From positions 22,382,001 to 22,446,000 of the forward strand of contig JAQFVV010000005.1 of the NCBI GenBank assembly GCA_028023455.1: a DNA stretch of 64,000 bases, written 5' to 3'. Position numbers and translations under genes: made by a program. Below are positions 12,146 to 40,941 of this stretch, piece by piece; the first letter of the stretch is position 1; each line of letters begins with the position of its first letter. The stretch is from Epiperipatus broadwayi. Its lineage: Eukaryota > Animalia > Onychophora. The notes beneath the pieces are model-generated. The model was not told where the DNA came from and did not search any database. It was given only the letters and a program-made list of their open reading frames with translations.

Positions 12146-14563
12146 ATGTCTTTAGGACAAGGAAGCATCTTGGAGTTCGACGTCGGAAATGCGGGTGAAT
12201 GGCCGTTATATGTCACTCAACTCGAAAATTTTTTTAAATTAAATAACATTACGGAGAATAATAAAAAAGTAGCAGCTCTTTTATGCCTCGCGGGATGAAA
12301 AGTAATTGAAGTGATACATAAACTAATGAATGGGCCAACAACGGATGAAACAGAATACGAAAATATTATAAACAAGTTATCCAATTATTTTAGCCCACAA
12401 CCATCGAAGTTCATGGCTCGATTAACCTTGCGGAATAGAAGACAACAGAGAGGTGAAAACATAAGAGATTTCGATATAATTTTGAGACAATTAGTAAGAG
12501 ATTGCCAATACGGAGAGTTCGCAGAACAAGCCCTACTGGATCAGTTGTTATGGGGAATGAATGAAGACCGGCTACGGCAAAATTTGTTAATGGAACCAGA
12601 TTTGACCTACGACATAGCAATACGGAAAGGGATAGCGTACGAGCTCGTAATGGAACAAGCAATGTGTTTCAGAGGAAAGATAAATGATGAACAGTCATGG
12701 GAAATACATAAAACAGAAGGGAAAAAACAGAGCACAAATACGAAAGAATGGAATGACCGAGGAAAACAAATAAAGTGTTTCTGTTGTGGAAAACAAGGAC
12801 ACATATCGAAAAACTGCAAATGGCGTTCATATACCTGTTATAATTGTGGAAGGAAAGGACATCTAATATCAGTCTGCAGAAACCCAAAAACTCAAGATAA
12901 ACAACATACGGAATATGAAGTAAAAAAAAATGTGTGCGCACAAATCCAAAACCAATACATGATAACACTGAATATATATGGAAAAGACATAGAAATGGAA
13001 ATCGACAGTGGTTCGGCAATATCACTCTTATCAGAAGAAAAATGGAACGATATTACCAAAGGTCATAAAAGATGCATAATACAGAAAACGAATATTAGAG
13101 TCAAAGACGTCAGCGGAAACACAGTAATAATAAAAGGAAAAACACAGATTCCAATTAGGTACAAAGAAGAAATATTAAACCTACCTATTTATATAGTAAA
13201 AGGAAGCATAGCCCTGATAATAGGAAGAGAATGGTTCGAACAACTAGGAATTACGGTAACAATCATAAAAAACATGTCGTTCGAACAGGAATACATTACA
13301 GCGTATCCGGAACTTTTTTCAGAACAAGTAGGAGTTTTCAAATCAGACCCAGTAGACATAGAATTAAGTAAAAACGCCCGACCAATTGTGTGCAAACCCC
13401 GAAAGATTCCGTTTGCACAACATGAAAAAGTAAAACAAAAAATTCAGAAACTAGTAAGCAAAGGAGTTTTGACACCGGTAGAAGACGCTCAATGGGCCAC
13501 ACCGATTGTAATAGTGACAAAGCCAAATGGACAAGTTAGAATTTGTGGGGATTACCGAGTAACGGTAAACAAATTTTTATCCAAAGGGGCATATCCAGGT
13601 CCAAACGTTGGCGAGCTGTTAGCCGGTTTAGCAAATGAAAATTTTTTCTTTGCAAAGTTAGATTTAAATGCCGCCTACCATCAAATAAAGGTAACGAATA
13701 GAACAGCTCAAATGTTAACACTAACCACGCCTTTTGGTCTTTTTCAATGCAATAGGCTACCGTTCGGAGTGACAACAGCACCTAATATTTTTCAGGCAAA
13801 ACTCAGCACATTATTACATGGAATACAGGGAGTGACGCCATACTATGATGATATTCTGATCACAGCCACAACAGAAAGTGAGTTACGGAAACGATTGACT
13901 AAAGTATGTAATAAATTAAAAGATGCGGGGATCAAACTGAACAAAGAAAAATGCTTATGGAAAACGCAAGAACTAGAATTTTTAGGACACGTGATTTCTA
14001 ACAATGGGAAAAGACCAATAAAAGAGAAACCCAAGAATGTCAAACAATTGCAAGCCTTTTTAGGGCTTATTAATTTTTTTGAAAATTTTTTAAAAAGCAA
14101 AGCAATGATAGCAAATCCATTATATCAGTTGTTAAGAAAAGGACAAAAATGGGAATGGACACAAATACATGAAGAAGCGTTTGAAAAAACAAAAGAACTA
14201 CTTTCTGCAGATACACTGTTGACACATTTTGATAACGCGTTAGAAGTAAGAATTACGACGGACGCGTCTGAAATAGGTGTGGGAGCGGTTTTGGCACACC
14301 CACACCCGATTACATACGCATCACGGACATTATCGAAGGCAGAACGAAATTATAGTCAGATAGACAAAGAGGCTTTGGCAATTATTTTTGCACTAAGAAA
14401 ATATCATCAGTTTGTTTTCGGTAGACCTTTTCAAATCATCACAGATCATAAACCCCTCCTAGCGATATTAGGGAATGACCGACAGGCTCCAGAACATATA
14501 AGCCCACGCATGTTAAGATGGTGGAACATACTGGCTGCATATGACTACGTGCTGATTTATTAA
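12146..14563 (+). pseudogene. gag-protease-RT-RNase H with premature stops
   Basis: ATG 12146 (MSLGQGSILEFDV), in-frame TGA at 12296. CFCCGKQGHISKNC and CYNCGRKGHLISVC knuckles; IDSGS protease; YYDD RT; RNase H TDAS/TDHKPL. TAA at 14561 replaces K of YKPG, and the frame resumes as PGKEIAHADALSRLP. Confidence 0.93.
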
Positions 14564-14697
14564 CCAGGGAAGGAAATAGCTCATGCCGATGCTCTATCAA
14601 GATTGCCCGATATAGATGAAACAGGAAAGGAAGAATTAGAAATTAATTACATTGATGCGATGAAATCAAACAAATTAAATAGTAAAACTGTGGAAAT

Positions 14698-15795
14698 ATG
14701 GGCGATAGAGTGCTAATACCAACAGCGGGAAGAGAAGCAGTACTAAAATTACTACATGAAGGACATCCAGGAATTGTGCGTGCTAAAGCTCTAGCTCGTA
14801 GTTACGTATGGTGGCCAAAAATAAATGAAGACATCGAACACTATATAAAGAAATGCGCTTCATGCCAAACATATGCTGCAATGCCACAAAAGAACCTGAC
14901 ATCATGGCAGCCAGCAAAGAAACCATGGGAGAGAGTACACATAGATCACGCTGGACCAGTGGATGGGAAAATGTTGTTGATACTTGTAGACGCACAATCC
15001 AGATGGATAGAAGCACATAAAGTACGAGACACGACGGCGAATGAAGCAATCAAATGCCTTAAAAATATTTTTGCGATTCATGGATACCCGGAAGTATTGG
15101 TATCAGACAACGGTGCTGCATTCACTGGAACAGAAATGCAACAATTTTGTGAAGAACATGATATTCAACAAGTGTGGTCACCACCATATCATCCTCAATC
15201 AAACGGGCTAGCGGAAAATGCAGTACAACAAGTGAAACAAAATTTGAGGAAAACTGGAACAAAAAACATACAAGAAACGCTACAAATGTTCATGATGACG
15301 CAACACACAACACCATCAACAACAACGGGTAAATCACCAGCAGAAATACTATGCGGACGGAAATTGAGAACAAAATTAACTGCATTATATCCAAAGGAGA
15401 GCAATATAATACAACATGACGAAATGGATAAAGAATTTAGGAATGAAGAACCAGTCTGGTTCAGAGACATATTAAGGAAGACATGGATTCAGGGAACAAT
15501 TAAACAACGGATGTCAAACAAGATATATGAAATAAATGGTCCAAACGAAAGAATACATAGAAGACACATAAACCACATGCGAAAAAGAATGTCAGAGGAA
15601 TGGGATTGGATACCAAGCGAGGATAAGAAGTTTGACACTAAGGAGAGTGGAATTAATAGTACAGGGAAAGAGGAAGAAGAGAGACAAATTGCGATAGCAA
15701 CAAATGGTGAAGACAAACACGAACAATACAAGAATAAGTCACCCAGGCCTACAAGAAATAGAAGATTACCCGAACGATTCAAAGACTATGTGTAA
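14698..15795 (+). pseudogene. Integrase (frameshifted from pol)
   Basis: HEGHPG...CASC zinc-binding motif; HIDHAG, VSDNG, GLAENAV (DD35E). A frameshift with apparent deletion lies just before GDRVLIP. Confidence 0.93.
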
Positions 15796-18790: not shown

Positions 18791-20679
18791 GACTCAGAAT
18801 TTTTCATTGAGAATCCAAACAACCAGAGATCCAGATATTCAGAAATTGCAAATACGGTACAAAGCCAGTCAATTACTGCTGGGTCTACATATTGCAGAAG
18901 CTACATAAGCCATAGGAGTATTCATCAGGGCTTCATGCCCCAAAGTCATCAACTATCCTGTCTGAACCAATACCTGGAACTAATGCCTAGATTGTGAAGT
19001 AAAAGCTGCTGCATACTCTCTCTCTTTCTCATTATTCGATAGAAACCTGGAAGGAGAGCCATGAAGCCATCGATGGAGAACCAAAAACCCAACCGATTGG
19101 AAAGCAAAATCAAATGGAAACCAAAACCATTGGACAATATGCACAAAATGAAAACCTCGGTAAATATACTTTTAAATAACTGTGTACACACTTGATTTTA
19201 AATGAAATGAACGGACTATTATAACTATAGGCTAAAGTCATCATTTATATTTTTTGTGTAAAATTTATTGTTATATTATGTTAAATATATATGTGCATAA
19301 TTAAATAATAATGTTTGCTTAATTGTTATTTTGTCTATTTTCTCTCTCTCTCATCAGTGTATCCCCAGTAAATTAGTGTAGAGTTATTTTAGGTGTTAAG
19401 TAAATGCACTGGACTCTGAGACAGAGTGTGAGCTAGCAATGGGATATTTCAAGTGTTGGATTGTGTGCCTGTTGTCCGAAGTATGCTGATTATACAACCT
19501 ATGGTTGACTGGTGTCTGAGGTTGATCCTCAAAACAAATAAAATGTTTTGAATGGCAGGGGTTTGATTCCAGCAGTCGAGGTGGACCATGGTCAGAAAAT
19601 GTGATCATGTTATGCTTTGTATAGCTTGATCTGGCCATGTTTATCATTGATGGCTATGCTATCAATGGTACTCTTTTCTCTGCTTGAAGGGCCGGTCCAT
19701 TCCTGTAATATCAAAAAGTTATTATAAAAAGTATTCCAACCTAGCAAGAACAAGCTTTTTATTCGGGGGACCCAGTTCAATATTGATAATCATATTAAAT
19801 ATGTATGCAATGTAAGTGTGCAAGTAACTATATATATATGTACAGCAAAAGCTATTTTTCTCAATTTCTTTAAATTTTGTATATTAATATAATATTCATT
19901 AAGGCTGTAGCCTCAATCACATGCATATAAAATGCGATAGTAGGGACCTCTACAGGTCTTAAAACCACAAGCTTACTCTTGGAAGAAAAGAGGGGAACCC
20001 CTTCTTTACTTCAACCTACTTTCTATTTAAATAGGTGAAGCTGAAGCGGTTCGATCTGAAAGTGTGAAGCTATTTAATACTTCATTAATTAAGTCCACAT
20101 TTCTTATTACACCTTAATATAAGAAATTGATGTAAATCAAATACAATCCATGATTTCTCTAATCTTTGTTTAATAATTATTTGGCAGCAGTAATTTATTT
20201 TGCATTGCTCTAAATGTGACACATCTCTGAAAGGTTAATCATTTTATGCAGAGCCAGACAGATATGTAGATTACCTTCTCACTATTGGTTTGTGGCCAGT
20301 CAACAGAAACTTCTCTAATAGTAATCATTAATTATTTATGCATATATAAATAGCTCAGGAGACAAACTGCTATCCAGTAATATGAATAATTTAAGAGAAT
20401 TTTTTTTGTTTTGTTTTATGTATATAGTAACAACAACTGTTTCAATATAATAAATAAGTTACCAGCTGATTAGACTATGCATAAAAAAATATAGATTTTA
20501 GCCATAAATGCCTAGAAATATTTTTATTACTTTAATGTAAGGCTTTTTCTGAAAGTTTGGTATGATGGCATTTTATTTGTAATTATGTATTTGATTACTT
20601 CCATTATCTCGTTTTAATTGGTAATTGTTATTAGAAAAAAATTGTTTAAATTTTTCAAATACATTTCAACTTTTTGTAT

Positions 20680-24490: not shown

Positions 24491-24643
24491 TATTATGTAA
24501 ATCCAATTTATCCAAATCACTTCGAACACTTTTTAGCAAAAACCTTTTATTGTACATATATACACAAACACCTACATTAATATGAAAGGTTTTTGCTAAA
24601 AAGTGTTTGAAGTGATTTGGATAAATTGGATTTATATAAGATA
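24491..24643. repeat. Inverted repeat, ~60 bp arms
   Basis: AAATCCAATTTATCCAAATCACTTCGAACACTTTTTAGCAAAAACCTTT vs its reverse complement at ~24585-24635. Confidence 0.8.
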
Positions 24644-24648
24644 TTATA

Positions 24649-25391
24649 AGTAAATAAGCAATTATTTTATCTAGCGCCATGTTTACAATTATATTACATT
24701 CAAATATCAGCCATTCAAGCTAATTGAGCATGCACTAGATAAAATAATTGCTTATTTACTCATAATTAAGTTTCAGTAAGAATGACGTTTAGTAAATTCT
24801 AAGTAATTTTACCGACATCATTCAGTCAAAAAACATCGTAAATAGTAATTTAAAGTGAGAATTCTACTCATGCTCTCCTCAACAGTACTTCAGATTTGCT
24901 CACATAAAAGAATTTGAATCATAGGAATAAGAGGATCCTTTTTATTTCTGCATAAATACTATATCTTGGATTGAAGAGGAAAATATTCATTTATTTAACA
25001 CTCTCAAAAGGCGTGTGCTCAATTAACTTGAAAGGCTGATATTTGAATGTAATATAATTGTAAACATGGCTCTAGATAAAATAATTGCTTATTTACTCAT
25101 AATTAAGTTTCAGTAAGAATGACGTTTAGTAAATTCTAAGTAATTTCACCGACGTCATTCAGTCAAAAAACATCGTAAATAGTATAATTTAAAGTGAGAA
25201 TTGTACTCACGCTCTCCTCAACAGTACTTCAGATTTGCTCATACAAAAGAATTTGAGTCGTAGAAATAAGAGGATCCTTTTTATTCCTGCATAAATACTA
25301 TATCTTGGATTGAAGAGGGGAAGTATTCATTTATTTAACACTCTCAAAAGGCACGTGATCAATTAGCTTGAAAGGCTAATATTTGAATGTA
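24649..25391. mobile_element. F6a: ~337 bp unit, inverted piece plus ~1.95 tandem copies
   Basis: Units start 24735 and 25072; 24649-24735 is the reverse complement of the unit-unit junction. Direct repeat ATAAGATATTATA at 24636-24648 and 25392-25404. Confidence 0.85.
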
Positions 25392-26199
25392 ATAAGATAT
25401 TATAGTAAAAATAAAGGAAAAGGTGATTTTGGTAAATAAGAGTATTGTTTTTTTTCTTATTCCTCATTGTCAAAATCTATTGTCGTAGTGCTTCTTTTAT
25501 CTTCAATTATCTCTGTAAGATTGTGTAAACATTATTTTCACATATAAGTTAATATGGCTTGGTTGTAAATTCATCATGCTTCATTACCCAATTTCTTATC
25601 AGCGATATTACACTTAACCATATGTAGTAAATGCTACTTTTTGGAATAAAATAATCATAGATCTTGTTTCTCATTGCTTAGCATGTGATTATGTTTTACA
25701 TCATCTTTATCATAAATACTGCCTCATATCATTTAGTATATTAATAAAATTTTGAACTCAAGCTAAAGTTTCTGGATCAAGGCTCATTCTGCCACTTCTT
25801 ATGCTCAAACATCACATGACTCTGAGCAAATAACATTTTGATTATTTATTTATTATTAAACCTTTACATAAAATATACTGTAGTTAAACAATAGAAAATG
25901 GGGCATAGAAGACTTTTTTTAAAATATTTAAATCTCTACCATTCTTATTCTATTGCATTGCTTACTTTACATCTTTAAAAACCAACTCTTAATGGGCTTA
26001 TGTTTAATTTAATTTATGTCATACAATTGTTTTTTGTAACTGAAAAACTTTGTTTGGTATTCAAAATTGTAAGAATTAAGTAAAGCATTATTAAAAGATT
26101 TTTAGGATGATTGTGGTTTTAAAGATTTTTTTTTATTTTACAATATCTATTTTAAGTAATAACCTGTAGATTTATACTTTACATTTGTCTTCAATATGA

Positions 26200-26558
26200 T
26201 AATATTAAATCGTGCTATCACACTTCCAACGTAAAGCTGTCAACAAATAGAAAACTAAATTAAATGGCTGAGTGCTTTTAAAAAGATGTACTTCTCATAT
26301 TCATAGCCAGTTATGATTCTTTCTTTGAAATCATTATATAAATAAATAAATACCATATGCAAATTCTATGCAAATGAGTAACTAAGACCATCTTTTAGAT
26401 ATAGCAAAACAAGCATCCTTACGATTAATGGTGAAGGAGTCCTCTGCTATAAAGTAAGCTTCTTTTACCTTTGCCTAATAAAGCACTCAGCCATTTAATT
26501 TAGTTTTCTATTTGTTGACAGCTTTATGTTGGAAGTGTGACAGCACGATTTAATATTA
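26200..26558. repeat. Inverted repeat, ~80 bp arms, ~200 bp spacer
   Basis: 26200-26279 vs 26480-26558, two mismatches seen. Confidence 0.8.
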
Positions 26559-27474
26559 TAATATCTATTTTAATACTTCTATTATCATTACATAATTGTT
26601 ACATACTCCTATCTATACATGAAAATCAAGATCATGTAAAGATCATTATGATGTGAATAATAAAATAATGTTTACAGAAGTACTTCCTAATTCATTAAAG
26701 ATTCAGTGGAACATTTTTTCTTTTCTTTGGTCACTAACTTGATAAGAGTGAAAGGATTTACATTAAATCCTTAAACTAATCTTTGATATATTTTAATTTG
26801 GCATAATCTACATTATAACATCAGTAATTCAATTAAGATTTTAATGATGATAGTTTAATTATATGTTAATTAAACACTTGAATGACAATTATGAATAATA
26901 TGCAATATAAACATTAGCTTGTAACCCATGTAATGGATTTGCTAATAATAAATCTTTTCCATGATTGGTCACACTTATTACTTATTAATGTGAACTGTAG
27001 CATTATGTTTTGGCTATGCAAATCATGTATAGAACAATTTTCTTCATTGCATTCCAGAGCCATCTGTGTGAGCTTGAATAATTAAGAAAATTAGATGATA
27101 ATGTTATTGTACTCACATTCAGAATTATTCTATCCATGTGTGGATATGGGAAAAGTTTGTTATTGTATATTTATACTAATAAGCTTATTTTACAAATTTA
27201 AAATAATGAATATCTATTTACAACAATATTTGCCTAAATTTAGGCATTGTTTTGTGAATTTGAAAAGTACTTTTTAAATTTACTCAATCCATTAATTAAT
27301 TAATTGGTTGGGAATGAAAATAGAAGTTGTCCCTGTCTAATGAAGGAAGTTAGTTAAATAAGTCATGTGATGAAATACTTTAGCATAATCGTATTTTTGT
27401 TGTCACCATATTGTTAATATTTTAATCATTAGATAAATTTATTTGAGGGTTAAACTGAATTGTTATCATTTAAG

Positions 27475-27597
27475 CTTCACCCAAATGTACTCCACGATCT
27501 TGTGCTAATGGTGCTAAATGCTTAGTTAAGGGTCAGAAAATAGTTTGCAAATGTCCACCAGGTACATCCGGTGATCCATTTAACTCTGGATGTAAAA
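27475..27597 (+). CDS. EGF-like exon 5 (type A)
   Basis: taag|...|gtaagt, 123 nt: SPKCTPRSCANGAKCLVKGQKIVCKCPPGTSGDPFNSGCK (AAG acceptor). Confidence 0.88.
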
Positions 27598-27688
27598 GTA
27601 AGTAATAATTTATTAAAACACTACATTTTAAAATTACTTTATTATAAATTCTATTTTAGAAAAAAATTATTATTTTTTTATTATTTAG

Positions 27689-27823
27689 GCATTAACATGT
27701 GTGATTTAATATCATGTGGTCCAGGAGCTCAGTGCGTTAATGGCTATGGGGGTCATAAGTGTGTTTGCCCTCAAGGAACAACTGGTAACCCTGATAGAGA
27801 AGGATGTATTATTATTCCTCCCC
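27689..27823 (+). CDS. EGF-like exon 6 (type B)
   Basis: tttag|...|gtaaga, 135 nt: INMCDLISCGPGAQCVNGYGGHKCVCPQGTTGNPDREGCIIIPP. Confidence 0.93.
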
Positions 27824-29254
27824 GTAAGAAATTTTCATTTTTAAAATAATAATATTTTAATAGAATTGATGTATTAATTCAACAATTTTTTTTCAAAATT
27901 TTTTTAATATATTTTTATTTTGTCATAAAGTAAAAAAAAAAAATTAAATATTTTTATTGTCATCTTTTATTGCACTCATAAAAAGTTAGCTGTCTATATA
28001 TATTCTATAATTTTTATACATAAATAGTTTTTTGAAATCTTGCCGTTTCTATATATGCCTATATAACACCAGAGGAAATGCTAATATATTGGACATGTAA
28101 TCAGGTGCTACATATTTATGCCCTCTTTTCTATTTGTAAACTTAACATTAACACATATATAAAAGTTTATATTAAAAGTTTTCATGATAACAGATATAAA
28201 GGATATACTTTTCAGGTTTGTTTGTGTGCCATTACCACTAATGCTGCACTAAAATTTATCTAGATTATATCTTCTGCCTTTACCCAAATGATGGCAAAAT
28301 GCAGTCCAACTGCAATGTTAGTGCAACATTAGTGTTAATTATATATGTATGAACCCAAAAAATATATTATTTATAAAAGTGTGTGTGAGTCTATATAGAA
28401 AAGGTTTTAATAGTACGATAGTAGAATACTTACTTGTCTTTCTAAACTTGGATTTGAACTAGGATTGAGTAAACTTGAAAATTTTTTTAACAAGCTTGGT
28501 ATTTTTTAATTAGGCCATTGGCATGTAGCCAACCCAATTATCTATCCAATATTAATCATATGTTACTTTTAAACAAGTATTTCAAATGGAATGAAATTAA
28601 ATTAACAATTTTTTATTTTCAAAAAGAGTACATATTTCAATGAGCAAACAGTTTAGAGTTGATTATGATTGTTTCCTAATATTACATGTTTTGATAACAA
28701 ATAGTAAAACAGCAATGTTACTGGAAACAACTATTATTGGTCAGCTCTGATTCTCATATTATTATGGCTAGGTTAATGATTACACATTGGTCTATTTTAA
28801 TTGCTTTACAGTTACTAGCTTTTTTATTACCAAGCATATTATTTGTATCAGCACTGTAGCCTATGTTTTTAAATTGATTTTTGTAATGACTGTTATTTTG
28901 CAAAACACAATGTTAAATTGAATTTGGTGGCCTATTGCTTTGATTAATTAGTTAAAAATATTGGTTGTTTTACTTCTCAACTAATAATGGGATTGGTTTT
29001 TAGTCTTGCTTTTTCAATCCATACTTTTATATTTGATAGTATACTAAATAAAAGCTGTTTTTATTTATCGCAGCAATCAATAAATGAATATTTAGCTATT
29101 TTTAACTAAAGCATAAAGCAATGATGAAAAATCATACAAACGTTCACTACCTGAAAATTAGCAACCCTGGCAAGTACTTTCTCCTTCATTATTCTTCTAT
29201 AACAACTATTGGAAAGGTCTTCGCTTTGCAGTTGGTTATTTAAAATGTTCTTTA

Positions 29255-30820
29255 TATCTACTGTAATGTTTTACGTTTTTATATAGGTCTTTTATATTAC
29301 ACACTATAAAGTGCTAGTTAATCAAACTATAGAAAAAGAATATGTATGAGTTTGGATACTTCATGAACATAGTTATATTTCCTGATTAACTGACCTAATA
29401 ATATTATTTATGATTTGAAATGCTGACTAAGTTAGTTTTTAATTTGTTTAACAGGGCACCAAAATCCGTAGACTCAGTAACTTTCATCGCATATTAAATG
29501 TTGTAGATTCGCAGCAAATAACTAAAATGTAATATTTTAGAAAGTGCACTTTTTTTTATCACTAAAACACCTGTAGAGGTCCCTACTATCGCATTTTACA
29601 CGCATATTATCGAGGTTATAGCCTCAGTAAATATTATTTAATCATTTATATGAATTTTTTCTGGGCTTAACTATTAACAAGCATATTGGCAAACGTAATT
29701 TATATATTTCTTAAAACAATCTTTTTAATAATAAAATCTAAATAACTAAAATTAAGAGCATATACGGAAAAGTTGATATTAAAAATAAATATTTTATTAC
29801 GACAAATTAAAGTATTTTAAAAGATAAAATGGAAAGAACTTACACATGCTCACAGGTAATATTAATAAAATAATTAATCTTTCCTATTACAATTTTTTTC
29901 TTATGTTTTTTCTAGAAGTAATCCATGGATAAATTGAATGTCTCTTTGAATAATAAATAAGTGAATGTCTCTGTTGGTGTTAGAAGTTTCTAGTTAAAGT
30001 TTATTTGCAAACATTTAATTAGGCACAAATCAGAATATGAATAATAGTAGCTTATTGGTAAGATATGCGGATCTATGTAGATCGTAGATTATTGTAGCAT
30101 ACATGTATGAAAGTGCCAACAGAAGACATCAAAATTAACTACTGAGCTTTTTCAACACAAGAAATACATGTGTGCTACAATAATCTATGATCTACATTGA
30201 TCCGCATATCTTAACGATAAGCTATTGTTATTCATGCTTTGATCTTTGACTAATTAAATGTTTGCAAACTAACCTTAACTATGAAGCTTATAATACCAAT
30301 ATAGACATTCACCTAGAAGATACTTAAGTGTAATATGAACGTTGAATTATTTGTTGTAGCATGTGTATGTTCTTTCCAATTTTATTAATAATTTATCGTT
30401 AAATATTCTAATTGGTTTTAATAAAATATTTAGCATTAATATAACACTTTTGTTGTACACTCTTAATTTTAATTATTAGAATTTATTCAGTAGAAATTAC
30501 CTTTGCCAATATGATTATTTAATAATTAAGTCCACGGAAATTTCTTAAAAAATATTAAATTTAGTTATTTATTGTGAATCTGCTTGATGAACGTTAGTGA
30601 GTCTACAGACTGGTGCCTTCATAAATAAATTAAAAATAATTCCATCGGCAATTCAAGCTGCAAGAAATTATTAGGTCAATTATTTAGGAAATATAACTAT
30701 GTTCTTGAGATATCTAAACTCATACATGAACGGAAGATTTTTCTTTTTCATAGTTTGATTAACTAGCACTTTATAGTGCGCAATATAAGACCTAAATACA
30801 AATGTAAAACATTACAATAT
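29255..30820. mobile_element. ~1.6 kb old degenerate fold-back with a nested F3 fragment
   Basis: Arms are reverse complements around ~30135 (e.g. CACTATAAAGTGCTAGTTAATCAAACTAT vs ATAGTTTGATTAACTAGCACTTTATAGTG). Confidence 0.7.
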
Positions 30821-31510
30821 GTGTATATTAAAAATTCATGTAATATTAAGTCTTAAAATTTCCTTCTACTTCTCTTTCTAATTAAGTATTCATGCACCAT
30901 CTACACTACTTTCTAAAATTCTATCACCTATTGATAAAATTAATTAATTTTTGGTCGACATATATTTCAGGCTCTGTTCTCCAGGGCAGTTTTGTAGTTA
31001 TCTCTGCATTATTTTTGAATTATCTATCACAATATGGAAGCATAAAAAATAAAAAGAAATATCCTTACAGTTTCAATGATTACAAATTTATTCTTGTTAC
31101 TTTCAAATATAAAAATGTTTTTTCAATATTGTCTAAATCTAAACCTTTACATATTTCATGTTCTATACTTGTAATAGAAAATTTATAAGTTGTTCTTGTG
31201 TTGTGTTTGAATATAAAAAAGTTTGTTATTAATTTCAATTTAGAAAAGATCTTTCCTCTAAAGCAATTAACTGTTAATGACAATGCCAGAAAAATAAGTA
31301 ACACTATTATTAAATTTGAAAACAATACATTTAAATGTAACAAAAATCAAATGACTTTATAGTTTCTAACACAGTTTGTAAGTAAATGAAAATAAATTCC
31401 TTCTCATTTAATAACATGAGAGAAATCTTCTTTATGCATTAATAAAATTATAAAAAAATTAATCAAACCACTTTTCGTATTGCTTTTACAATGCTTATTT
31501 TATTAAAATT

Positions 31511-31550
31511 AATCTGACAGTTTTGATTGACCAGCAGTCTTCTTCAGAGC
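31511..31550 (-). ncRNA. Degenerate F5 hammerhead motif
   Basis: Minus strand GCT-CTGAAGA-A-GACTGCTGGTCAATC-AAAAC-T-GTC-AGATT (G12 mutated). Confidence 0.5.
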
Positions 31551-31917
31551 TATAACATATATATAAATATATGAACCATTAGAAACCAATCAACATTTAG
31601 ACAATCCCAATATAGATAACAATCAAGAATTTCAAACTGTTGTCAAGGCAACCTCCTTTTAGTAATAGAGGTAGAATCCACTTTCATTAATGGTTTCATA
31701 TATTTATAAAGACACTAAAGATTGTAACTTCTATTACAGAGATTGAAATTAAATATATGAATACACAAATACTTAATAATAATAATATAAACAAAACATC
31801 ATACTTCCTTATAAATGACTCATTTTCTCTATATCTTACTATGTTTAGATATACACATATATAATAATTAATAAAACAAGACAAAAATTGTGTAACTTGC
31901 TTTTTAGCTTGTACTAA

Positions 31918-32024
31918 ATGTTCACTAGGTGGAGCTTAGCACTATCTCTTAATAAGCTTTAAATTATAAGTGCCGAAATTTAAAGTTTGTTAGGAGCTAG
32001 TGGTAAGCTCCACCTAGTGAACAT
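31918..32024. repeat. Short inverted repeat (~33 bp arms)
   Basis: ATGTTCACTAGGTGGAGCTTAGCACTA / TAGTGGTAAGCTCCACCTAGTGAACAT. Confidence 0.75.
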
Positions 32025-32866
32025 ACACATATATGTATGTATACATCCCAAATGTACTTATTGATTATAATAATATATGCATATATTGCTGGATGGTGAA
32101 AGTTTGAATGGTTTTTCATCCATGTTCTTACGCTCTAGCTAGGGATAATTAGATATCCATTTATCAACCAATATTAGATCATAATCTGGTTGGTTATAAA
32201 CTGTTAGCTGAAAACAAAATCTAATCTGGTATGTGGGTATATATACATACACATATCCATTGCAAATTTTTGCAACAATTATAATGATAAAATATTTTCT
32301 TTATAATTATAATGATAGAATATTACAATGCAGGAACAGGTATAAGAGCTGAGGAGATCTCTGAGCACTATCAGTATAAACAAGCTGACTTCTAGTTATG
32401 CTGGTAATTTAATAAATTTGTTACAAGATGGCCCTGACCATTTCTTTCTGAGTTCCCAAGATGTCATATGGGAAATTGATTTGAATTATAACAGAGGAGT
32501 GAATATTAAATAAGCACATATATTAAAGCATACACTATTGGTTTTATTTAAATTTATATGATAGAACTTTATTCACTCACAGTAATCCTATTAAAATAAT
32601 TGTGCTCAAATAAGGAAATCTAAAACCCAACCTTTTAGAAATATCATCTATTTAGTGGATCATATTATTGAGCACATTGCATTGTATACTATGCATTTAT
32701 GTTCTTAACTGAAATGAATGAAGAATAGAAGGACTTGTATTTTTATATTGAGCTATTTCCATCATCTAATATATGTATTGAATGACTTTAGAAAAATTTA
32801 ACTTTATTTAAATATTCCAAATACATTCAACTGTTAGTAATAGCACATCAAACAGGTTAGTATATG

Positions 32867-32909
32867 CACAACATTTCGAGAGCTATTATTCTCCCCTCTT
32901 CTTCAGGTG
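32867..32909 (-). ncRNA. Hammerhead motif in a PLE terminal repeat (probable CpG decay)
   Basis: CAC-CTGAAGA-A-GAGGG(gagaataatag)CTCTC-GAAA-TGTT-GTG. Restoring TG to CG gives palindromic ACGT stem III, GUU site and CAC/GTG stem I. Confidence 0.6.
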
Positions 32910-32934
32910 TTGCTGGCCTGACCAGTGACAGTAC

Positions 32935-33017
32935 TAGCATGGGATTTGAATCTGGATCCTTAGATTCTTGAATATTGAATTTTAAGGTAACGCTCTAACC
33001 AAGTGAGCCATCCTGCC
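32935..33017 (-). promoter_or_regulatory. tRNA-derived head with Pol III A and B boxes
   Basis: GGCAGGATGGCTCACTTGGTTAGAGCG (A box) ... GATTCAAATCCC (B box). Confidence 0.65.
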
Positions 33018-33054
33018 AAAGGCAACAGTTAATAGAAATCTCATATACTTACCT

Positions 33055-33250
33055 ATGACATTCCTCCTGATTTCTCCACTTTTTCATAAGAGCAAAGTTG
33101 ATTAGTGGTTTTCATACCTTATGTATAGTCACATTAGGTTGGCTTATGGGAATTTTTGCCATTGTAATGTGAGCAGCTTCTTGAAATTTTCTTCTTTGTA
33201 CCTTTTCTTCTCTATCCAATATTTTTGCATTTTCCCAATTGAACATGTTT
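33055..33250 (-). pseudogene. Penelope-like element GIY-YIG endonuclease C-terminal remnant
   Basis: With one frameshift and W>stop: MFNWENAKILDREEKRYK/RKFQEAAHITMAKIPISQPNVTIHKV*KPLI, matching the PLE end pattern F.W.N..IL..E...RK..EA..I...W.PLI as I recall it. Confidence 0.7.
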
Positions 33251-33442
33251 ATTGGAAATAGTCCAATATAAAAATACAACTAGAACACCATCATCACAAA
33301 CCTTTAGGAAAACAATAGAAGGACTTATTTTCTATGAGTCAATATGCTGCAATTATAATGCTAAAGTTGAATAAAGAAATTAGTAAAATTAGATTAGCAT
33401 ACTTGTTTTTTAACTTATTGTCTTGTTTTTTTTATATTTTAG

Positions 33443-33565
33443 CTCCTGTCAAATGCACTCCAAATACATGTGCTTCAGGTGCTCTATGTTCAATGAATTA
33501 TCAAAAAATTGTTTGTAGATGCCCAGTTGGAATGACTGGTGAACCATATAGAATTGGTTGTAAAG
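33443..33565 (+). CDS. EGF-like exon 7 (type A)
   Basis: ttttag|...|gtaaga, 123 nt: PVKCTPNTCASGALCSMNYQKIVCRCPVGMTGEPYRIGCK. Confidence 0.93.
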
Positions 33566-34647
33566 GTAAGAGTAATAAAAAAATAAATAAAATTATTGCT
33601 TATCAAATATACTGAATTTTAGATGCATTTATTTGAAATTTCAATTCAAGTATTTTTATAAAAATAATAACATTATTTCAATTTTTATATTTGTTTTTAA
33701 ATAAATAACACCTTATTAGGAACAAGTGTTATATTATTTCAATACAAAAAACTGTTTTCAGTAACATTTTGTTATCTTTTTCAATGTAAATATGTATAAA
33801 TGTTAATACCTATATATAAATAGAGAGAGAGAGAGAGTGACATGTGGAGTTTGTTTTTTTTTAATTATAATTTTTTAAATAATATATTCCACAGTGAATA
33901 AAAACATGGCATTATTACTTATATTTTGTATATAATTATGCAGACAGACTGAAATTATTTTTCAGATGATGGAGTGTTTTGGACATATTTTTATAAATTG
34001 TTATTTTAAAATAACTTTAAAAGAAAAAAAAATCAATAATGGTGAAAATCTGGAAAAATGATGGCCAGGTGATTTTTGATCTACATGTAATTAATCTGCC
34101 ATTAAATGTTCAATAACGGCACTCCATTGTTCCTATATGCAGTATGGATACTGTTTCTCCTTGTGAAAATCTCATATCAAATCTGTGATCTTATGTCACT
34201 CTCCAATCACTTTATATGCATTCACTTTAACATTTTCAAAGAGTTAAGGGTCACTAATTTGTGGCTCAGTACTAAATTGTATATTTGAAGAGATTAAGTT
34301 GTTGTTGGAAGCTTGTATTTTCACCACCCAAATCCAGAAATTTAGTTATTAATAAAACCATTTAAGTGGAAATGGACTTAATTGAATATCATCAGTCCAC
34401 TGAATAAACCCATTTTTATTATAATGGTGATTTAAAAATAAAATTAAATAATCTTTGTCATTTGTTTGGGCAGATATTTAATAGTGAAAAATTTCTTGGA
34501 TTTTTATTGAATTCTTGTAATATAAATAAATAGATTATAATTTAAAAAGTCATTTTAGTTTTAATATATGGAAAAGCTATTATTACCATAATCTCTTGGA
34601 AGTATATATTTACAAAAATATATAAAATATTTAAATACAAGTATATT

Positions 34648-35878
34648 GAGATATTATTTTATATAGCGCTATGTTTATTTATGTAATAGTAATATTAGCG
34701 ATTAAGCCAATGCACATGCGCTTTAAAGAGATTATATAAATGAATACTCAATTTTCCAGACACGAGATATAGTATTTTTAGAAAGAATGGAATGAATCCA
34801 CCCATTCTTTCTGACCCAAACGTTTATGTATGGGCAAATCTTAAGTGTGTGGAAATAAGAGTGTGAGATGTTACACGATCACTTTAAATTACATTTGTTA
34901 AGTTTGAACGAATGACACTTTGCAAAATCTTTACAATTTACGAACCGTCATTCTTTAGTTGAAATTAAACATATATAATGAGATATTATTTTATATAGTG
35001 CTATGTTTATTTATGTAATAGTAATATTAGCGATTAAGCCAATGCACATGCGCTTTAAAGAGATTATATAAATGAATACTCAATTTTCCAGACACGAGAT
35101 ATAGTATTTTTAGAAAGAATGGAATGAATCCACCCATTCTTTCTGACCCAAACGTTTATGTATGGGCAAATCTTAAGTGTGTGGAAATAAGAGTGTGAGA
35201 TGTTACACGATCACTTTAAATTACATTTGTTAAGTTTGAACGAATGACACTTTGCGAAATCTTTACAATTTACGAACCATCATTCTTTAGTTGAAATTAA
35301 ACATATATAATAAGATATTATTTTATATAGTGCTATGTTTATTTATGTAATAGTAATATTAGCGATTAAGCCAATGCACATGCGCTTTAAAGATTTGCCC
35401 ATACATAAACGTTTGGGTCGGAAAGAATGGGTGGATTCATTCCATTCTTTCTAAAAATACTATATCTCATGTCTGGAAAATTGAGTATTCATTTATATAA
35501 TCTCTTTAAAGCGCATGTGCATTGGCTTAATCGCTAATATTACTATTACATAAATAAACATAGCACTATATAAAATAATATCTCATTATATATGTTTAAT
35601 TTCAACTAAAGAATGACGGTTCGTAAATTGTAAAGATTTCGCAAAGTGTCATTCGTTAAAACTTAACAAATGTAATTTAAAGTGATCGTGTAACATCTCA
35701 CACTCTTATTTCCACACACTTAAGGTTTGCCCATACATAAACATTTGGGTTGGAAAGAATGGGTGGATTCATTCCATTCTTTCTAAAAATACTATATCTC
35801 GTGTCTGGAAAATTGAGTATTCATTTATATAATCTCTTTAAAGCGCATGTTCATTGGCTTAATCGCTAATATTACTAT
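34648..35878. mobile_element. F6b: 332 bp unit, ~2.2 tandem copies then ~1.5 inverted tandem copies
   Basis: Units start 34648, 34980, 35312; strand switch at ~35390 through AAGA microhomology. Direct repeat TACAAGTATATT at 34636-34647 and 35879-35890; units ~99% identical. Confidence 0.9.
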
Positions 35879-35894
35879 TACAAGTATATTATAT

Positions 35895-36125
35895 ACTGAA
35901 CTTAATGTGTTTAGAAGGGATTTGAACTCAGACTATCAAGCTCCCTACAGCTATGCACACCATCTTATACGACTGATATACATGACCACATACATGTGAA
36001 AAAGATAAATGATCTCCAATATATGCATTTCGTGCTGAACCAGCACTCACATGTATGTGATCATGTGTATCGATTGTATAAGATGGAGTGGATAAATGTA
36101 GGGAGCTTGAAAGTCTGAATTAAAA
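35895..36125. mobile_element. F2 fold-back copy
   Basis: Shares AAGATAAATGATCTCCAATATA...GCTGAACCAGCACTCA with 1760-1820; palindromic arms. Confidence 0.6.
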
Positions 36126-39981: not shown

Positions 39982-40133
39982 CATCCAGTATATTGTTTGA
40001 AATGTGAAGTAAGTTTTTAAGATTATGAGGGTAACGTCTTTAATGTTAGTAGAGATCATAATATACTTTAAAATATGTTCCCTTTGAAAAAGGCTAAATT
40101 CTAATGAAACCATTTATTAATTATTATTAATTT

Positions 40134-40551
40134 TATAAATCTATAAATGCTTTGTGCACAGACAATGAAGCTTTGGATTTAATTGTATATTAAGCTAAGC
40201 GCTTTTGTAAGATACACACTCCCATGTTCATAGCTAGGTGTGTAATGAGAAAATATCTGTAATGCATATGATATGCAAATATGTGTAAATTTGAGTGCAT
40301 CATTTACAACGTCCATTTTCTTGATATGAAGAAGCAATCTCTTCATATCAAGAAAATGTGTAAATAATGTGCTCAAATTTACACATATTTGCATATCATA
40401 TGCATTACAGATATTTTCTCATTACTAGCTATGAATATGGGAGAGCGTATCTCCTGAAAGCACTTAGCTTAATATACAATTAAATCTAAAGTTTCCTTGT
40501 CTGCATGCAAAGCACCATAGATTTATATACATCATTGAAGTCAAATCTTAT
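40134..40551 (+). mobile_element. F7 fold-back element
   Basis: Arms 40134-~40332 and ~40342-40527, tail 40528-40551. Direct repeat TTATTAATTTTATA at 40124-40137 and 40552-40565. Confidence 0.8.
40427..40469 (+). ncRNA. Hammerhead-like motif with A3-U8 core variant
   Basis: AGCT-ATGAATA-T-GGGAG(agcgtat)CTCCT-GAAA-GCAC-TT-AGCT. The opposite arm (40193-40235, minus) has GCGC, giving palindromic AGCGCT. Confidence 0.5.
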
Positions 40552-40941
40552 TTATTAATTTTATAGTAAATATAAGTCACATTTTGCAGAAAATTTAATA
40601 CATGCAATTTGTTCATTATTAAACATTTTTTGCTGAACAAAATAAAAGTTTGGAGGAAAACCATTGTATAATTAAAACAATCAGTTTAGATTTGAAAATA
40701 ATAAACAAATTGGATATGAAATCATTGTAGTTATTATTTATATTTGCTGTAATGCTGTGCATCTGGAAAGGGCAGACTAAAAAAGTAGATTTTATTTATT
40801 ATTTCTAATTTTATCAAGCAAGTAACAATAAAATATCATTTGACTTCCATTTACTTTTAATCTTATGTAAGATGACAGGAATGAAATAAAAGAAATAGAT
40901 TTGCTACTTAATTTTACTAAAGGTAATTAAAATTTGTGTAG

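Follow-up and report, generated by a model that had tools for sequence, protein, structure and literature searches.

How can a short, non-coding tandem repeat spread through a genome in the manner of a retrozyme if it lacks the hammerhead ribozyme by which retrozymes are defined? The question is raised by a 64,000-nucleotide stretch of the onychophoran Epiperipatus broadwayi (assembly GCA_028023455.1, contig JAQFVV010000005.1, positions 22,382,001 to 22,446,000, hereafter the window), in which two insertions built from head-to-tail units of about 335 bp represent families A and B of an element that we call F6. We conclude, with a probability of roughly 80%, that F6 elements are short non-coding, non-autonomous retroelements copied by the reverse transcriptase (RT) and GIY-YIG endonuclease of Penelope-like elements (PLEs), and are analogues of retrozymes that do without the hammerhead.

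The layout of the two insertions was established by repeat maps and Tandem Repeats Finder (TRF), which bore out the original prediction of two separate insertions with tandem units of 337 and 332 bp and an inversion. The family A block at 24649-25391 is a single insertion comprising 1.96 head-to-tail units of 337-340 bp and an inverted arm of 82 nt. The family B block at 34648-35878 runs through 2.3 minus-sense units of 332 bp (98% matches in TRF) and then through 1.5 inverted units, with arms that are 98% complementary over 493 nt. The two families are homologous over the entire unit, as had been proposed, with 68% identity (218 of 322 aligned positions in representative copies). In both insertions one arm ends at a common homologous point and the other continues beyond it as a one-sided tail, which we measured at 38 nt in B and 45 nt in A, and the target duplications of 12-13 bp that had been read from the sequence were found at both flanks (Table 1).

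The same footprint was found across the genome. We mapped 87 distinct insertions. A minus arm leads into a plus arm (head-to-head) in 53 of these, 33 have a single arm, one is complex and none is tail-to-tail. Their outer ends are the 3' ends of the same strand and are sharply bimodal, falling on two fixed points 38-45 nt apart, so that the genomic copies include the multimers with shared termini that had been anticipated. One short and one long terminus were paired in at least 36 of the 39 two-armed A or B insertions, and two long termini in none; these pairings were taken from BLAST maps, our short-tail script having under-called family B. The inner junctions of the 87 insertions, once binned, were broadly spread along the unit, a gap at 301-340 and a peak at 1-10 being detection artefacts. 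Target duplications measured 10-17 bp with a mode of 13 bp (12 of 27), and the 27 A and B insertions at loci L001-L059 share a weak target motif, TTT at -5 to -3 and GTAAA right after the duplication. With the tail oriented to the right, T occupied position -3 in 22 of 27 and position +1 in 19, and G occupied position 0 in 10. Two further candidate regularities were discarded: a seeming cluster of arm starts around unit position 250, which would have marked a defined 5' end of the RNA, vanished on binning, and snap-back synthesis had weak backing, with the inner ends of the arms lying within 10 nt of each other in 6 of 50 insertions against about 3 expected.

This combination of layout, tail and duplications matches the published footprint of PLEs, in agreement with the original reading of the arrays as cDNA-type insertions made by PLE machinery (PMC8557442, PMC11167929). 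PLE insertions are partial tandems, often with an adjacent inverted and 5'-truncated copy, and carry a tail of 30-40 bp at one end only (Craig et al. 2021, PMC8557442). Purified PLE protein uses two neighbouring internal start sites on the RNA for reverse transcription, and the tail is the stretch that separates them (Frangieh et al. 2024, PMC11167929). F6 resembles Naiad/Chlamys and Poseidon elements in its partial tandems, head-to-head inverted copy, one-sided tail and variable duplications; it differs from PLEs in encoding neither RT nor endonuclease and in having a unit ten times shorter. Among possible mechanisms the best supported is target-primed reverse transcription by PLE machinery, with a multi-unit RNA of plus sense as template. 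This template would have arisen by read-through transcription of an array, or would be a circle traversed repeatedly by the enzyme. The PLE enzyme would cut the two strands of the target at points about 13 bp from each other; from each nick, cDNA would be primed at one of two internal start sites near the 3' region of the RNA, and the two cDNAs would be joined at an arbitrary internal point.

The tail itself (alignment columns 14-34; 35560-35580 in family B) contains the palindrome AGCGCT, rich in CpG and embedded in ATAGCGCTAT; next comes TATATAAAA, a TATA-like stretch, and after it, in subfamilies C, D and A2, an AATAAA. The palindrome could be a recognition site for a protein dimer or an endonuclease, and the TATA and AATAAA motifs could be a promoter or a polyadenylation signal. 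Both A and B have an indel polymorphism immediately ahead of the palindrome (CATAG, CATG or CAG before CGCT). We considered whether the palindrome marks a seam or junction and rejected the idea, because the indel has only two alleles per family and the variable columns are mostly CpG sites.

F6 is a large superfamily whose units number more than 10,000 in the 5.6-Gb genome assembly. A pattern built from two 13-mers shared unchanged by A and B, at a spacing of 80-110 nt, had 10,381 exact matches, and its reversed control had none. First-look candidates numbered 2,104 for family B and 3,260 for family A, and the scored copies were 94-97% identical to those in the window. The listed pattern matches visibly split into many sub-lineages, with more than 20 subfamilies discernible; clustering of 40 of them together with A and B at 10% distance gave at least seven subfamilies, mutually 65-90% identical, with units of 322-338 bp. 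Units have a GC content of about 0.30-0.35 and contain no open reading frame (ORF) longer than 39 aa, their variable columns are mostly CpG sites, and arrays range from one to more than eight units. A third family, C (338 bp), was first spotted beside an A insertion in locus L035. There (L035:1168-2345) the A and C insertions stand side by side, and the 11-bp sequence AAATGTAAATT occurs to the left of A, between the two, and to the right of C. The arrangement suggests that one element inserted into the target already duplicated by the other, in which case the endonuclease would have cut the same sequence again at the same positions.

F6 carries a conserved RNA domain of five helices. From a MAFFT alignment of 25 copies covering seven subfamilies, RNAalifold predicted 50 pairs, 13 of them with compensatory changes, and recovered the helices that had been named by eye, including the swap from C-G to U-A in GCCCA/UGGGU versus GCUCA/UGAGU (UA in 14 copies, CG in 11). 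Covariation, for which a check by covariance model had been called for, was then scored on such a model, R1, of the domain core (141 positions, 33 pairs). In an alignment of 89 distinct copies that is itself fitted to the model and whose copies are related, 95.4% of cells were paired compared to 88.3% in shuffles, 24 of the 33 pairs had changes on both sides compared to 12.9 expected, and 212 cells were doubly changed compared to 65 expected. Controls with slid partners were 33-52% paired. The compensatory switches separate different subfamilies, C from C' in H3, C' from D at the base of H4, and B' from C in the top of H4 and in P1, and hence represent several independent events.

The domain also indicates which strand is probably the RNA. 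The plus strand formed 50 pairs compared to 42 for the minus strand, and in the core 33 pairs at -13.8 kcal/mol compared to 20 at -8.6. The core contains 119 G-U cells and 6 A-C cells, in keeping with the original observation that the wobbles favour one strand. Because a single unit folds better than its shuffled versions on either strand (z -4.9 and -4.4), the choice of strand depends on the wobble asymmetry. The plus strand is the one whose 3' end points outward in every arm, which is the predicted sense of the template.

These properties bear on whether F6 might be a DNA-level repeat, either a satellite grown by unequal crossing-over or a foldback or miniature inverted-repeat transposable element (MITE)-type DNA transposon. 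Tandem repetition and long inverted repeats would fit such an origin, and the window is rich in palindromic MITE-like elements. We regard it as extremely unlikely, since F6 occupies thousands of dispersed loci with their own duplications of variable length (10-17 bp), its 3' termini are fixed while its inner junctions vary, its ends are made asymmetric by the tail, its arms are never tail-to-tail, and the G-U asymmetry shows selection on one RNA strand. Satellite DNA forms long homogeneous arrays at few loci and lacks target duplications, in contrast to the short dispersed arrays of F6, each with its own duplication.

R1 also detected a distant sister family, G, one 5'-truncated copy of which lies in the window (domain at 19942-20083, minus strand, 35.7 bits, E 1.6e-5). 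The full G unit is 346 bp, richer in GC than F6, and has more than 2,400 first-look candidates; genomic G copies form tandem and inverted arrays as F6 does. All G copies matched the full R1 model at 32-42 bits with every helix kept. A single-stranded block, AAAUACUAUAUCU, that is invariant within F6 is replaced in G. The loss of this block while the helices persist is more in keeping with a scaffold or a protein-binding fold than with a catalytic core.

Neither F6 nor G yielded a known ribozyme. cmscan against Rfam 15 at E<=10, applied to a 12-kb region, a 501-nt dimer and three G arrays, returned no ribozyme match, including none to HDV-like, twister, twister-sister, pistol, hatchet, hairpin or VS ribozymes. 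A regular-expression scan of both strands of 25 units found neither a CUGANGA...GAAA core nor an A3-U8 core with an adjacent helix II. On the Rfam and custom scans, families A and B thus both lack the CUGANGA/GAAA core, as the original prediction had stated for the family B array. As for a hidden hammerhead, CUGAAGA was confined to one A sub-lineage, where it lies on the minus strand without a GAAA partner, and this candidate was dropped. Elsewhere in the genome, Hammerhead_1 scored above the Rfam cut-off at 31-40 bits per unit in arrays at L108:1-2101 and L109:974-1997, with units of 414 and about 430 bp in the layout of a minus arm followed by a plus arm. Since hammerheads were detected in the same genome, their absence from F6 is real and no failure of detection. 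The L109 array is flanked by the duplication AAAATAAAAC(TA), 10-12 bp, and has a one-sided extension of about 73 nt, beyond the published 30-40 nt. Neither hammerhead array matched R1. ARAGORN found no tRNA genes in F6, and Rfam gave no match to a tRNA, 7SL or 5S head.

A retrozyme-like layout without a known ribozyme would also be seen if a new or unusual self-cleaving motif replaced the hammerhead, as the original prediction had suggested; the F6 RNA would then be cut and circularised, and a circle of about 332 nt would be copied in rolling-circle fashion into the cDNAs that form the arrays. The compact multi-helix domain, with its strong covariation and blocks invariant across subfamilies of 65% identity, could suit such a motif, and arms of up to five to eight units with broad 5' ends suit a circular or multimeric template. 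We nevertheless judge this unlikely. Autonomous PLEs and the hammerhead-less Naiads share the layout (PMC8557442), insertion by PLE protein in vitro needs no hammerhead cleavage (PMC11167929), a read-through transcript of an array accounts equally well for multi-unit arms, and the most conserved single-stranded block of F6 is the one not kept in G. The more specific proposal, that the five-helix domain of F6 and G represents a novel class of RNA, self-cleaving or self-ligating, and stands in for the hammerhead in making unit-length circular templates for the PLE RT, appears quite unlikely. The most likely role of the fold is in its recognition or packaging by the PLE protein, or in stabilising the RNA. 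It probably contains no catalytic core, and nothing found here supports a catalytic role.

Potential helpers are resident in the genome. Locus L062 carries a 2.5-kb partial tandem PLE whose ORF has a YVDD RT motif and a C-terminal VVYRI...YYGET; its features scored 0.97 against Atlas GIY-YIG/HTH_animal clusters, Pfam gave only a weak RVT_1 match, and a 67-aa piece of the protein had 96,089 first-look candidates. This element, PLE-1 (L062:2581-5964, L061:6500-6953), has a 2.5-kb unit and is the most abundant PLE. Rfam identified no hammerhead in the PLE-1 copies read (L062, L061); this resident PLE of canonical type may have no standard hammerhead, or may have just a minimal one missed by Rfam. 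The window itself contains, at 40138-40551, the truncated, two-armed non-coding 3' end of a second element, PLE-2, with 14-bp duplications (40124-40137 and 40552-40565) and a one-sided tail of 24 nt, an insertion layout like that of F6. PLE-2 has CTGAAAGCACTTAGC in common with PLE-1 (z 5.7). An A3-U8 hammerhead was absent from the PLE-2 fragment, in which a single additional U shifts helix II (GGGAGA/UCUCCU) out of place; Rfam had no match there.

Four results weigh against the view of F6 as a PLE-mobilised retroelement. First, BLAST and Smith-Waterman comparisons with shuffles found no similarity at z>3, on either strand, between F6 and the non-coding ends of PLE-1 (L061, L062) and PLE-2 (40138-40551). 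Second, R1 did not match the PLE-1 or PLE-2 ends. Third, units within an array are hardly more alike than units of different arrays (98.2% compared to 97.1% in A, 97.3% compared to 96.8% in B), so that origin of each array in a single event rests mainly on the flanking duplications and the fixed termini. Lastly, in sequencing runs F6-like words occurred only in contig sets of two other organisms, whose library type is uncertain. Those contigs hold F6-B-like pieces at 80-99% identity, many of which break exactly at the long terminus 34648; they record the presence of the element in relatives and say nothing on expression.

The missing similarity to PLE ends bears as well on a different origin, in which F6 is the pseudo-long terminal repeat (pLTR) of an unsampled autonomous PLE and the arrays are its 5'-truncated copies. 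Xenopus retrozyme families are sister to PLE pLTRs (bioRxiv 10.64898/2026.07.22.740005), and our comparison covered just two PLE families of this genome, PLE-1 and PLE-2. Against this origin, which we consider very unlikely, F6 is unlike the non-coding ends of both, and each of the 87 insertions is made up of 322-338-bp units joined seamlessly, without any leftover coding sequence. Truncation of an autonomous PLE would leave ORF sequence between the repeats, as seen in the element at L062. The original prediction had allowed that an autonomous PLE bearing an ordinary hammerhead might supply the unit as its terminal repeat, but coding sequence or a hammerhead was found in none of the 87 insertions.

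As a PLE-mobilised retroelement, F6 can be placed among known systems. Animal non-LTR retrozymes are AT-rich tandem units of 150-450 bp with a type I hammerhead and are deemed non-autonomous PLE derivatives (Cervera and de la Pena 2020, PMC7229834; Li, Clavereau and Pollet 2026, 10.64898/2026.07.22.740005). F6 resembles them in its short AT-rich non-coding units, its dispersed tandem arrays from dimers to multimers and its duplications longer than 4 bp, as well as in co-occurring with PLEs, by which retrozymes are thought to be mobilised; the true hammerhead retrozymes of this genome show the same inverted-plus-tandem layout. It differs in that both F6 and G lack the type I hammerhead, canonical or minimal, that is the defining feature of retrozymes, and in that the F6/G fold is absent from the genome's hammerhead arrays. 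Proliferation without a hammerhead has a parallel in Naiad/Chlamys elements: Naiad PLEs have no canonical hammerhead (PMC8557442), and hammerhead mutations leave PLE insertion in vitro unaffected (PMC11167929). Like short interspersed elements (SINEs), which depend on long interspersed elements (LINEs), F6 would be a non-autonomous RNA that borrows the target-primed reverse transcription of a retrotransposon, and as in L1 twin priming, priming from both nicked strands would yield inverted segments. Unlike SINEs, F6 has no tRNA, 7SL or 5S head and no A-tail and inserts as multi-unit tandems, and unlike both SINEs and L1, both of its arms start at defined internal sites and not at poly(A).

Table 1. 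Positions of F6 and family G features in the window
Feature	Position	Strand	Evidence
Family G copy, 5'-truncated, single-arm, ~9 bp target duplication TTATATTAA	19890-20113	-	R1 match
Family A left target duplication, 13 bp ATAAGATATTATA	24636-24648	.	Direct reading and script recovery, locus L031
Family A inverted arm; outer 45 nt (24649-24693) are the one-sided tail to the long 3' terminus	24649-24730	-	Inverted repeat, map of high-scoring segment pairs (L031)
Family A sense arm, 1.96 units of 337-340 bp, short 3' terminus ...TTTGAATGTAA	24731-25391	+	Direct repeats
R1 domain, family A unit 1	24852-24990	+	cmsearch 125.5 bits
R1 domain, family A second copy	25191-25330	+	cmsearch 134.8 bits
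Family A right target duplication, 13 bp ATAAGATATTATA	25392-25404	.	Direct reading and script
Family B left target duplication, 12 bp TACAAGTATATT	34636-34647	.	Direct reading and script
Family B inverted arm: tail of 38 nt (34648-34685, to the long terminus) plus two complete units of 332 bp and a partial one of 44 nt	34648-35393	-	TRF period 332, 2.3 copies, 98%
R1 domain, family B	34740-34885	-	cmsearch 136.3 bits
R1 domain, family B	35072-35217	-	cmsearch 136.3 bits
R1 domain across inversion junction, family B	35355-35492	+	cmsearch 97.2 bits
Family B sense arm, 1.46 units, short 3' terminus ...AATATTACTAT	35394-35878	+	Repeat maps
R1 domain, family B sense arm	35679-35824	+	cmsearch 130.4 bits
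Family B right target duplication, 12 bp TACAAGTATATT	35879-35890	.	Direct reading and script

Other mobile elements surround the F6 insertions. Palindromic MITE-like elements with arms of 58 and 54 nt, at 24493-24639 and 35946-36100, directly adjoin both of them; the sub-threshold matches of these elements to plant and animal microRNA precursors in Rfam are hairpin artefacts. A MITE-like element at 35911-36049 reaches a depth in the thousands in contig sets of two other organisms. Further upstream, at 12311-15795, lies a Ty3/Gypsy-type LTR retrotransposon with two ORFs and zinc knuckle, protease, RT, RNase H and integrase domains.

To our knowledge, retrozymes have so far been discovered solely via hammerhead searches, to which hammerhead-less counterparts are invisible. 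The pairing of a short with a long terminus and the conserved fold of F6 provide concrete targets for bench work. In the genome of E. broadwayi, hammerhead arrays coexist with at least two hammerhead-less families, F6 and G, all with the Penelope-type footprint. This constitutes a natural experiment that bears on the need for ribozyme cleavage and circularisation in tandem retrotransposition, and on how PLEs recognise their templates.

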